From contig NC_042997.1 in the NCBI RefSeq assembly GCF_006345805.1, positions 134,788,001-134,852,000 on the forward strand: DNA of 64,000 bases. The letters are read 5' to 3'. The notes under the pieces were generated by a model that did no database searches, was not told the origin of the DNA, and was given only the letters and a program-made list of their open reading frames with translations. A program made the translations under genes and the position numbers. Origin of the DNA: Octopus sinensis. Its lineage: Eukaryota. Positions 50,501 to 54,262 of the stretch are shown one piece after another; position 1 is the first letter of the stretch; each line of letters begins with the position of its first letter.

Positions 50501-51802
50501 TATTGATATTAGAATCCAATTCTTTACAATACAATAAATATATGATATAAATTAACATATATAAGTCTTATGTCTTGCACTATAGAAAAGCAGCAGAAAA
50601 ATATATTTAAACACTTTTATAATCATTCAATGGATGATAGATATAATTCAGAAAAAAAATTAAATAAAATATTTTTTTAAATATTATTTTTTCAGTTACA
50701 GTGACATATATATGTGTGAGAGCATTTGTGTGTCTGCAAATGCACATACAAACAAACAGGTATTCACGCGTACCTCCGCTCACACACATATATATAAAAT
50801 TATATTAAAATATATACAAAAATGCCTGTATATATATATATATATATATATATATATATATATATATATATATATGTGTGTGTGTTTCTGTGTGTGTGTG
50901 GGGGGGTGTGTTTGGGAATGTGTGTTTCACAGTTATATAACGGTTAAACTTAAATATTTATGTAAATATTACGTAAACGTTGTTGTTAGTGAGAATGTAC
51001 TGGTGACACCCTTACCTATTTTTAAGTAACCATGATATGGATATGGACTCAGAGAATCTTAGGGCTATTACAGTAATCTCCCCTTATAGAGTCGTCAATC
51101 AGTTCATGTAATCATCAATTACAAGTTTGTGACATACCAAATATCCATGGAGTCCAGCTCTCTATATTTGAATCAATTTGTGAATATAAAATTGTTTTGT
51201 ACAAGGATGAGTGGTGATATGAACGAAAATATGTAAGTATAATTCGTTGCATAGTGCAATTAATACACGAAGAAGGCTGTGAAAGGCCAGTAATTCTACG
51301 AAAGTCAGAAGTAAAATATAACATATGTTCATCTAATATATATTCATCCATCAAGCTTCCTAACTTTAAATGACATATATACATACATAAAGAAGGAGAG
51401 CGAGCGAGGGAGAGAGGGAGGGAGGGGGAGTGATGTATATATGTATATATATAGGTATACACACACATACATACATACACACACACACACGCACACACAC
51501 ACACACACACATATATATATATATATATATATATATACACACACATATATATATATATATATATATATATATACACACACATATATATATATATATATAT
51601 ATATATATACACACACACACACACACACACACACACACACATATATATATATATATATATACAAAAAGATTCAAGTTAATTTAAATGAATTTACTTGAAT
51701 ATGGTACCTAACTTAGATGCACCAAAAAAAACTATACTGTTTTAACAATACAGTAATGTGGGGTGATTATAAGCGAGAAAGAAGCAACAAAAATGGATAG
51801 GT

Positions 51803-51893
51803 TTTTAGTACAATCGTTTCATACAAGGACAGGCTTTATTAAAAGTTGTAAAAATTACAGCATATAAACGTGTCCCGTACTCATCAGCTAAAA
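51803..51893 (-). ncRNA. Type I hammerhead ribozyme motif (mirror copy)
   Basis: Reverse complement of 52847-52937. Confidence 0.8.
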
Positions 51894-52846
51894 TACTAGG
51901 ATGTCTCTAGACATCCTAGTGGTTGAGGCTATACTCATGAAGTAATGTAGATAATTAAGTAACATAAACAGATTTCCAAAGTTCATTAAAGTTCTTTAAA
52001 GATGATGTACAGTCTTATCACAGAATTTTAAAAAAGTTCTAATAGCATCACAGAGAAGGTGACCTAATCCATAGAGCACATATGAATTTCCAGAGATATG
52101 ATGAGGGATTACATACTCACAGAAGACAAATTTATCCATTGTTAATCACAACGAGGTGGGTCTCAATTCCTGCTTATTAGCATTACAGAGAGGGTGAATT
52201 AATCCTTTGTATAGATGCACAATTTCCAATGGTGTAGATGTAAGTTTCCAGAGAAATGAAGAGGAATTTCATATTCACAGGCGATAAGTTTATCAATGGT
52301 TGAACACAATGAGGTAGGTATCAATTCTTGTTATATGATTAGGTATTAGCTACAGCCTATTGTAAATAGCAGTAATGTGATTAATGTGGCAAATACCTAA
52401 TCATATAACAAGAATTGATACCTACCTCATTGTGTTCAACCATTGATAAACTTATCGCCTGTGAATATGAAATTCCTCTTCATTTCTCTGGAAACTTACA
52501 TCTACACCATTGGAAATTGTGCATCTATACAAAGGATTAATTCACCCTCTCTGTAATGCTAATAAGCAGGAATTGAGACCCACCTCGTTGTGATTAACAA
52601 TGGATAAATTTGTCTTCTGTGAGTATGTAATCCCTCATCATATCTCTGGAAATTCATATGTGCTCTATGGATTAGGTCACCTTCTCTGTGATGCTATTAG
52701 AACTTTTTTAAAATTCTGTGATAAGACTGTACATCATCTTTAAAGAACTTTAATGAACTTTGGAAATCTGTTTATGTTACTTAATTATCTACATTACTTC
52801 ATGAGTATAGCCTCAACCACTAGGATGTCTAGAGAACTCACATGTA

Positions 52847-52937
52847 TTTTAGCTGATGAGTACGGGACACGTTTATATGCTGTAATTTTTACAACTTTTA
52901 ATAAAGCCTGTCCTTGTATGAAACGATTGTACTAAAA
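52847..52937 (+). ncRNA. Type I hammerhead ribozyme motif
   Basis: ttttag-CTGATGA-gtacgggaca...tgtccttgtat-GAAAC-gatt-GTA-ctaaaa: 6-bp stem I, long stem II, intact core, GUA triplet. Confidence 0.8.
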
Positions 52938-54262
52938 ACCTATCCATTTTTGTTGCTTCTTTCTCGCTTATATATATATATATATATATATACATACATA
53001 CATACATACACACACACACACACACACACACGCACATATATATTTCGTTTTAGGATTTGGTTTGCAAGATTCTTTATATGAGTTCGTGTGTTGAAGAGTC
53101 AAAACTATTGAAAAGGTTGCAAGACGCAACAAAAATTTTAGGACAGTAAAAAGATGAAAAACGTGGAAATTTTACCTGTGAGTGTGTTACGTAATAAGAC
53201 GCAAAAAGAAAATGAGTCTCGCCGGAAACAATAGTATATATATATATATATATATATATATATATATATATATATATATATATATATATATATATATATA
53301 TATATATATATATATATATACACATACATACTATATACTATCTATATGTACACAAATATATGATACCAAAAACCATCAGTCATGCACTTCCTCACAATTA
53401 GGCACTTAACTGTTTTGAAAATTCTGGCTACGTTTTTGAAATGTTATTCAGATGGAATGAAATGTTTTTAATTATTACAATTATGTTACCTAGTTATGTT
53501 TTATATATATACGATAAAATGGCACCAAAGTAGGAAACCATGTGCATTTGATGTGTGTACAGGTGTCTGTATTTTCATGCATGGTTGCTTCTTCTAATGA
53601 GGATAAACAATGAAGACCGGTGTATCTAATGCTAGGAACATGTAACGTATATGTAAAGATATTCCAATACCATTTATCGGTTTCAAATTTTTACATATAA
53701 AGAAGATTGATATAGTTTAGGTAAAAATATTGCATATATTCAGAATGAGTTAAATAAGATAGTAAATAAGATAAGAGTTCCCCTCAGTGTTTACAAAATA
53801 AAGAAAGACAAAATAATTTCAAAGAGATATTTCTCGAAAGTGGTTTTTGCCAATGTATGTATTTATTTTCAAATATATACTTATATACACGTAAGTATGT
53901 GAATATTTATATGCACATATATATATTTATATTTGTATATATGTGTGTGTGTGTATGCGTGTGCATGTGTGTGTGCGTGCTTGTGTGCATGTGTGTGAGT
54001 TTGTGGTATGTGTTTGTGAGTATATATACACACAAAGTGAGAGAGAATGAGTTAGCGAGAAAGAAATGAATAGCGTGGGAGAACGCATTTAAATATGTAC
54101 ACTTGTATGATTTTGTGTGTGTGTGTGTATGTTTCTTATGTGTTTTTTATAACAACCACACAGTGGTTTACTTAACCTTCCATAACATTGTGAAAAACTT
54201 TTGTGCTACACACATTTGAATGTTCAATGATGTTGGCCGATATTACGACTCTCGTTGTCATT

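Follow-up and report, generated by a model that had tools for sequence, protein, structure and literature searches.

Penelope-like elements (PLEs) are retroelements whose insertions were reportedly described by Evgen'ev and Arkhipova in 2005 as carrying pseudo-long terminal repeats (pseudo-LTRs), an inverted truncated copy and a one-sided tail. Here we analyse a stretch of 64,000 nt from the Octopus sinensis genome (NC_042997.1, positions 134,788,001 to 134,852,000; called the window, and numbered from its own first base), in which a near-perfect palindrome with a hammerhead ribozyme (HHR) motif in each arm lies downstream of IL17-B and is missing next to its paralog IL17-A.

PLE insertions are strongly 5'-truncated, often form partial tandems (the pseudo-LTRs), and are often accompanied by an adjacent inverted 5'-truncated copy, resulting in inverted repeats; a tail of 30-40 bp is found at one end only, and microsatellites, (TA)n among them, are favoured as targets (Craig et al. 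2021, PMC8557442). In canonical PLEs the pseudo-LTRs contain HHRs (PMC8557442). In vitro, a purified PLE protein (PAc) cleaves and extends both DNA strands and favours AT-rich DNA, and it starts reverse transcription internally on the RNA, which is its authors' explanation of the tail (PMC11167929). PLE families are present in O. vulgaris, including among the young insertions counted (PMC13282606). Animal non-LTR retrozymes are non-coding tandem HHR repeats for which a dependence on PLEs has been proposed (Cervera & de la Pena 2020, PMC7229834; Li et al. 2026, preprint 10.64898/2026.07.22.740005). The type-I HHR of metazoans has a helix III of 1-2 bp with a small palindromic loop, and a single such HHR cleaves little or not at all, a second copy being required to form a dimer (Cervera & de la Pena 2014, PMC4209133).

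We propose, with a probability of about 0.72, that the palindrome is a young insertion of a non-coding, HHR-bearing retroelement into (TA)n, of the class of animal non-LTR retrozymes or non-autonomous PLE partners. The two arms are most likely 5'-truncated copies of one element that lie head to head and were inserted as PLEs do. This proposal starts from features that can be read directly: the anatomy of the insertion, the HHR motif and its covariation, the recurrence of the same architecture in the window, the empty site beside IL17-A and the lack of coding capacity.

Anatomy of the insertion downstream of IL17-B

Over 24.4 kb, the stretch 20546-44963 of the window matches at 100% the locus of an annotated IL17-like protein, XP_029649878.1, on chromosome CM016859.1 of the O. 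sinensis assembly GCA_006345805.1. The window holds a segmental duplication in which copy A (26116-39708) is paired with copy B (48498-64000) at 95-98% identity. The insertion is specific to copy B, and its parts, flanks and empty counterpart are as follows.

51662-52972: the whole B-specific insertion, 1311 bp, within a (TA)n tract
51662-51767, minus strand: one-sided extension ('tail') of 106 nt past the family's usual 3' end, on the left copy only
51768-52354: left element copy, with minus as its sense strand, an outward 3' end and a truncated 5' end at the centre; identity to the reverse-complemented right arm 98.8%
52355-52384: asymmetric centre, 30 nt (52348-52391, 44 nt, if counted strictly)
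52385-52972: right element copy, with plus as its sense strand and an outward 3' end, which is the one usual for the family and lies beside (TA)n
51897-51903 (left arm, 7 nt) and 52836-52843 (right arm, 8 nt): replaced patch, the sole internal difference between the arms
52071-52330 (left arm), with its mirror at 52409-52668 (right arm): diverged tandem repeat, period 158 nt, 76% identity over 102 nt
51430-51661: left flanking (CA)n/(TA)n microsatellite, the target tract
52973-53035: right flanking (TA)n/(TACA)n/(CA)n microsatellite
29260-29330: the corresponding site of copy A, empty, with its (CA)n(TA)n tract unbroken

Strict complementarity of the arms extends over 444 nt (51904-52347 / 52392-52835) and over a second block of 129 nt (51768-51896 / 52844-52972), both with 0 mismatches. 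If two mismatches are allowed, the arms reach 52354/52385 and leave a spacer of 30 nt; checked base by base, these mismatches fall at 52348/52391 and 52351/52388, near the centre of the palindrome. The value of '451 nt, 100%' given by the repeat search for arms 51904-52354 / 52385-52835 is thus a rounded one, with 2 mismatches inside. The end of the right arm coincides exactly with a TTATA of the element sequence, at which it meets (TA)n.

An earlier, sequence-only reading of this DNA had reported arms of ~580 nt around a 44-nt spacer (52348-52391), a diverged ~160-bp tandem repeat within each arm, (TA)n flanks, and a distance of ~1.3 kb to the IL17-B stop codon. The arms and spacer were borne out by the strict complementarity check, the internal repeat was recovered with the period given above, (TA)n/(CA)n tracts were found on both sides, and the distance from 52972 was measured as 1.29 kb. 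Overlooked in that reading was the leftmost part of the insertion (51662-51767), which is not complementary to the right flank and lies outside the palindrome. We could find no further copy of this tail in the 64-kb window or in O. vulgaris locus L002, and the centre sequence showed no similarity elsewhere in the same two sequences. The 158-nt internal repeats carry no HHR.

The patch that distinguishes the two arms sits 3 nt upstream of HHR stem I. In the left arm it reads TAGGATGTC and fills in a local hairpin, CTAGGATGTC-TCTA-GACATCCTAG, that is fully paired; in the right arm, 8 nt of another sequence occupy this place. This looks like a later template-switch mutation within a quasi-palindrome, by which an imperfect local hairpin would have been made perfect in the left arm only.

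When the B flanks are joined in silico they are collinear with copy A, with the junction inside the (TA)n of A at about 29275-29300, and the uninterrupted tract at this site confirms the absence from copy A that the sequence-only reading had reported. The same reading had placed the insertion after the duplication. Because the arms differ by ~0.5% or less (the two central mismatches and the one patch) and copies A and B by 2-5%, insertion after the A/B duplication appears to be the simplest reading of these sequences. Yet the element could also be confined to B because A lost it precisely, between the (TA)n tracts on either side, and arm-to-arm gene conversion could account for the near-identity of the arms, so that this dating stands as the simplest reading and not as the sole one that fits.

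We found no open reading frame (ORF) longer than 60 amino acids (aa) in the insertion arms, and a protein search with the longest one (60 aa) returned no homologue. In the absence of a longer ORF the element is not an autonomous PLE, and has passenger status at most.

The hammerhead motif and the shared 3' module

Each arm carries a type-I HHR motif near its outer end.

52847-52937, plus strand: type-I HHR motif of the right copy, predicted cut after A52931
51893-51803, minus strand: type-I HHR motif of the left copy, predicted cut after the base at 51809

Read outward, the motif is the same in both arms: UUUUAG-CUGAUGA-(GUAC-G-GGACA ... UGUCC-UU-GUAU)-GAAA-C-GAUU-G-UA/CUAAAA, with the slash at the predicted cut. 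On the plus strand, stem I is formed by 52847-52852 and 52932-52937, CUGAUGA occupies 52853-52859, GAAA occupies 52920-52923, and helix III is C-GAUU-G. Judged by C3-U4-G5-A6-N7-G8-A9, G12-A13-A14, A15.1-U16.1, H17 and the 1.1-2.1 pair, the catalytic core is complete on both arms (CUGAUGA ... GAAA-C-GAUU-G-U-A/C, with a G2.1-C1.1 pair). Helix II is ~60 nt long with an inner hairpin and is present in the centroid fold; helix III consists only of an A-U plus a C-G pair.

The motif is far more frequent in the window than expected by chance. A strict descriptor, which was written after the motif had been seen and which demands the core, a stem I of at least 5 bp, a helix II of at least 3 bp and a short helix III, matched 4 times as compared with 0.01 matches expected (100 simulated sequences); these are the two arms described here and the two arms of a second palindrome, P2 (see below). 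The plain pattern CTGANGA-N-GAAAC-NNNN-GTH matched 7 times against ~0.05 expected, one of the additional matches being the HHR of element X (see below).

Three single-copy relatives of the motif were found, two in the window and one in O. vulgaris.

42965-43612, plus strand: element X, a single non-palindromic copy in (TA)n, with its HHR at 43492-43569
47680-48316: X2, a segmental duplicate of X, its core mutated to TTAATGA
O. vulgaris locus L002, 5652-5783: a single-copy element of the same ribozyme family

The HHR of X has the canonical G10.1-C11.1 pair, a perfectly palindromic GAUC loop and the same long helix II with an inner hairpin (UGUAAU..UUACA). We imposed the HHR fold on an alignment of the palindrome arm, X, X2 and the O. 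vulgaris element, a small sample of 4 sequences from three independent lineages. In this alignment 94% of the cells pair and 6 pairs show compensatory changes, as opposed to 0-2 compensatory pairs in controls in which the 3' partners were slid by 1-3 columns. We conclude, as far as sequence comparison can tell, that the arm motif is a genuine and evolutionarily maintained hammerhead of the metazoan short-helix-III type. Given its minimal helix III, it would probably need a dimer for self-cleavage.

Compared with X, the palindrome HHR has two C-to-U changes, leading to a G.U at 10.1/11.1 and to a GAUU loop; in both, pairing is kept by wobble only. The same position is G-C in X, and U/U, or a bulge plus A-U, in the L002 element. 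The sequence-only reading had called the HHRs near both outer ends intact; this holds for the complete core and for the opposite strands, but not for position 10.1/11.1, where the pair is a wobble, nor for helix III with its 2 bp.

Rfam gave no hammerhead match over the whole window at gathering thresholds, nor over 1.5 kb around the palindrome at E<=10. The ~60-nt helix II together with the 2-bp helix III probably explains this miss. Sub-threshold Rfam matches of the generic long hairpin to plant microRNA families, and of the microsatellites, were judged meaningless.

What X, X2 and the L002 element have in common with the palindrome arms is only ~135 nt, consisting of the HHR and an end that reads ...GTTGCTTmTTT, and the bodies are unrelated. 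All three, and likewise the right arm, end 41-45 nt past the predicted HHR cut site, directly against a microsatellite. Since X, X2 and the L002 element are single copies that share this module and its end point beside a microsatellite, the sequences point to the arm, and not the palindrome, as the mobile unit. One 3' module carried by several elements is the pattern of non-autonomous retroelements that borrow a single reverse transcriptase (RT), and the mobilising enzyme plausibly recognises the element by this module. The HHR is present as a part of this 3' module of the family; it was not placed for IL17-B.

This arrangement bears on a further explanation, that the palindrome is a foldback DNA transposon or a miniature inverted-repeat transposable element with ~580-bp terminal inverted repeats and a TA target. 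Long terminal inverted repeats, a short middle and a TA-rich location would all suit such an element. Its termini should not be asymmetric, as they are here through the 106 nt extra on the left, and no target-site duplication is discernible in the (TA)n. In addition, the 3' module of the arm occurs in single, non-inverted elements with unrelated bodies, and each arm has an HHR that reads outward, a trait of retrozymes and PLEs. We regard this explanation as hardly credible.

HHR elements were not found everywhere. Three other O. sinensis loci (L007-L009, ~70 kb) contained neither the HHR pattern nor a copy of the arm, and the density of HHR elements is, given this result, patchy. An exact scan of Joint Genome Institute (JGI) metagenome contigs with the conserved helix-II segment produced two matches that lack HHR context, which we ascribe to chance.

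Origin of the palindrome

Further HHR elements and palindromes in the window belong to at least three groups, which we call P2, Y and Z.

23831-25044: P2, a second near-perfect palindrome, with arms 23831-24308 and 24474-24950 (478 nt, 99.2%) and (TA)n on both sides
43880-44480, minus strand: third copy of the P2 family, single, diverged (82%), with the same 3' end point beside (TA)n
22049-22680: family Y region, with a canonical HHR at 22600-22670 (minus strand; helix II GAAGAC/GUCUUC)
38018-38106 (plus strand), 62222-62310 (plus strand) and a truncated copy at about 44470-44560: family Z, HHR-like (CUGAAGA ... UAUAACC/GGUUAU ... GAAAC-GAUC-GUA)

P2 carries outward HHR motifs (CUGACGA...GAAAC-GUAC-GUU) at 24032-24081 on the minus strand and at 24701-24750 on the plus strand. 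It also contains a direct partial tandem, 24308-24481 being equal to 24871-25044, and its unit of ~565 nt is circularly permuted. The third copy of the family keeps the HHR core (CUGAUGA) and the tandem junction, and has a 6-nt deletion in helix II. Family Y shows a head-to-head pair (22049-22113 / 22153-22217; 65 nt, 97% identity, 39-nt spacer) and an older tail-to-tail pair that faces across the (TA)n at ~22372-22400 (81-98% identity). The candidate HHR of family Z has a weak stem I. In O. vulgaris, locus L003 (OX597814.1) holds at 6510-6896, on the minus strand, two short canonical type-I HHRs in direct orientation 354 nt apart (CUGAGGA/CUGAUGA ... GAAAC-UCGA/UCAA-GUC), which end at (TA)n(TG)n and are arranged as in a classical tandem retrozyme. 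(TA)n or related microsatellites lie directly beside the palindrome, P2, X, the third P2-family copy, Y and the elements of L002 and L003. The head-to-head layout is therefore not specific to IL17-B, with at least 2 further HHR-element structures of this layout in (TA)n within the window.

Retroelement remnants of another sort were seen at 5561-8521 on the minus strand, comprising an ORF of 323 aa that matches RVT_1 weakly and, downstream of it, an ORF with a CCHC zinc knuckle; they resemble long interspersed nuclear elements (LINEs) rather than PLEs. When the large ORFs of the window were searched against Pfam for a PLE, this weak RVT_1 match and the zinc knuckle, both LINE-like, were all that was returned.

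The sister structures are relevant to the possibility that the palindrome was created in the assembly, by a long-read fold-back or a missed-adapter chimera that entered the consensus. Near-perfect arms are what such an error produces, PLE-type inverted structures are known to trouble assemblies (PMC8557442), and the structure is known from one assembly. Against an artefact, both flanks run on collinearly with copy A and the contig is not folded back, and the unique asymmetric 30-44-nt centre, the 7/8-nt patch, the two central mismatches and the 106-nt asymmetry on the left speak against it as well. The P2 and Y structures cannot be assembly fold-backs because their arms have diverged, and the arms of the structures nearby (99.2%, 97% and about 82%) argue in the same direction. 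An artefact appears improbable to us.

We infer that a PLE was the mobiliser and that both strands of the target were primed, and propose the following course of events. A PLE reverse transcriptase with its GIY-YIG endonuclease would cut both strands of the AT-rich (TA)n target. The 3'-OH of the top strand on the left and that of the bottom strand on the right would then each prime a cDNA on the element RNA. The outcome of such dual priming is necessarily a pair of copies whose 5' ends face inward, towards each other, and whose 3' ends lie outermost, as seen here. The right cDNA would start at the usual internal site of the family, ~41 nt past the HHR cut site, and the left cDNA ~106 nt further 3' on the RNA, which would leave the one-sided tail. 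Both cDNAs would stop ~580-590 nt in, and would then be joined at the centre.

The second arm may instead have arisen later. In this scenario a single left copy with the 106-nt end came first, and a fold-back duplication, for example through a (TA)n break followed by hairpin formation or by template switching during repair, added the second arm and rejoined at TATA microhomology. (TA)n tracts can pair with themselves and break readily. The arms are all but identical, and the right arm ends at TTATA, where it meets (TA)n, both as such a duplication would have it. The same end of the right arm, however, lies within a few nt of the 3' ends of X, X2 and the L002 element, which is expected if reverse transcription starts there and would be coincidental for repair. 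Moreover, the head-to-head layout recurs in two unrelated element families nearby, and it is a documented primary product of PLE integration (PMC8557442, PMC11167929). A later fold-back duplication is thus possible and less economical than PLE-type insertion, and we consider it unlikely.

Two other routes were considered and rejected. A snap-back at the spacer hairpin CTATT-GTA-AATAG would be centred at 52363, off the axis of the palindrome at 52369.5. What LINE twin priming inverts is a different segment, and the same one is not duplicated by it.

Several observations weigh against a PLE-type insertion of an HHR-bearing retroelement. A search of the window and of ~140 kb from other octopus loci gave no second copy of the inner ~450 nt of the arm, and as a consequence the arm is recognised as a repeated element by its 3' module only. 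No autonomous PLE bearing this 3' module was found, there is no RT or GIY-YIG ORF in or beside the element, and the window has a single RT fragment (7550-8521, minus strand), of LINE-like appearance. The tail measures 106 nt, as compared with the published 30-40 bp. The curated Rfam hammerhead models do not score the arm motif, and its 10.1/11.1 pair is a G.U wobble in place of the conserved G10.1-C11.1. Lastly, the central junction shows no clear microhomology or snap-back signature.

IL17-B and RNA-level effects

The gene next to the element lies outside it.

54263-54754, minus strand: IL17-B coding exon, with its stop codon 1.29 kb from 52972

An RNA of either strand of the palindrome folds into a duplex of ~580 bp, with a computed minimum free energy (MFE) of -1051 kcal/mol. 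An AATAAA ~400 nt past the stop codon is conserved in both paralogs, at 53867 for IL17-B and at 30138 for IL17-A (both on the minus strand). This position suggests that the AATAAA is the likely poly(A) signal and that a normal IL17-B mRNA would end ~0.9 kb before the palindrome.

The sequence-only reading had held that any transcript through the palindrome forms ~580 bp of double-stranded RNA (dsRNA); the folding is physically right, but the conserved AATAAA suggests that the mRNA ends before reaching it. It had further held that the HHR could cut read-through RNA. Because both HHRs read outward, every transcript across the palindrome would have its sense HHR in the second arm, with the perfect complement synthesised before it, so that the duplex would bury and sequester the HHR as the RNA emerges. 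No transcript across the palindrome would carry two sense HHRs for a dimer. With the sense HHR zipped into the duplex and a helix III of the dimer type (PMC4209133) left without a partner, cleavage of read-through RNA is unlikely.

Taken together, those claims amounted to a functional reading, in which hairpin RNA edited by ADAR or diced, HHR trimming, or both, would give the two IL17 paralogs differing 3' regulation. The duplex that the RNA would form speaks for it, as does the position of the element on the downstream side of IL17-B only; and editing load reportedly follows inverted-repeat dsRNA across Metazoa (PMC5625713). Termination before the element, as suggested by the conserved AATAAA ~400 nt past the stop codons, speaks against it, and so do the location of the sense HHR in the distal arm with its dimer-dependent helix III (PMC4209133) and the scattering of similar insertions in the window irrespective of genes. 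We find this functional reading highly doubtful.

A bolder form of it, in which the palindrome is transcribed as a hairpin-RNA locus, by read-through from IL17-B or from an internal promoter, and the duplex is hyper-edited or diced such that the younger paralog gains a regulatory 3' environment, seems doubtful to us as well, if slightly less so. If it were true, head-to-head insertions of the PLE type would systematically supply long dsRNA to the octopus transcriptome, which is rich in editing. We infer rather that the structure at the IL17-B locus probably has no evolved function, and that any consequences of it are passive.

Orthologous loci were sought in O. vulgaris and O. bimaculoides by way of the IL17 protein; the loci reached (L002-L004) are members of a paralogous cluster (70-85% identity) or distant, and are not orthologous. 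In the protein cluster of IL17-A, the second member likewise comes from O. sinensis and is probably IL17-B, not an O. vulgaris orthologue. Beside the microsatellite, a polypurine/polypyrimidine segment of ~42 bp is inverted between the duplicates (29068-29109 in A, ~51390-51432 in B).

Comparison with known systems

The locus itself is of little weight, being most likely a neutral, recent transposon insertion that marks one of the two IL17 paralogs. Of wider relevance is that octopus genomes hold several families of HHR retroelements that are missed by Rfam, with at least 4 families in this window alone, and one of them with a helix II of unusual length. The near-perfect palindromes that they form in (TA)n, head to head, would be clean natural examples of the dual-strand priming that was demonstrated in vitro for a Penelope-like element. 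A DNA palindrome of 580 bp with a centre of 30-44 nt is expected to be fragile, as palindromes are unstable. Such palindromes are therefore candidate fragile sites and, if transcribed, candidate sources of long dsRNA (as substrates of ADAR or Dicer), and they are likely error spots for assemblies and annotation pipelines.

Among the described systems, hairpin-RNA loci and other inverted-repeat dsRNA loci (processed by ADAR or Dicer) resemble the palindrome in having a long near-perfect inverted repeat with a short loop. They differ in that the origin of the palindrome is explained by transposition alone.

The HHR resembles the metazoan type-I ribozymes known from newt, Schistosoma and the minimal HHRs of PLEs: it has the CUGAUGA...GAAA...UH core, an open stem I of 6 bp, and a 2-bp helix III with a 4-nt self-pairing loop (CGAUUG, with G.U pairs), implying action as a dimer. 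It departs from them in its helix II, which is ~60 nt long with a conserved inner hairpin instead of 4-8 bp, and in the G.U at 10.1/11.1 of the palindrome copy; no Rfam model recovers the motif.

With the retrozymes the palindrome shares a non-coding, AT-rich element and a type-I HHR with a short helix III and a self-complementary loop. Retrozymes also coexist with PLEs, and the 354-nt tandem in O. vulgaris L003 provides an example of them in octopus. Retrozymes are, however, direct tandems of monomers of ~170-400 nt, each with its HHR, that yield circular RNAs, whereas the palindrome has arms of ~590-690 nt in an inverted layout. As it offers one sense HHR per strand, in inverted and not in tandem order, unit-length excision is impossible at this locus.

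The likeness to PLEs extends to the insertion as a whole. The palindrome consists of head-to-head 5'-truncated copies with an HHR in the terminal region and, at one end, an extension that may correspond to the PLE tail though it is longer, to which P2 adds a partial tandem, and it lies in a (TA)n/AT-rich microsatellite without a discernible target duplication. It differs from PLEs in having no RT/GIY-YIG ORF of its own. The palindrome is thus most likely a new example, in octopus and with an HHR variant unrecognised by Rfam, of a retroelement insertion whose kind is already known.

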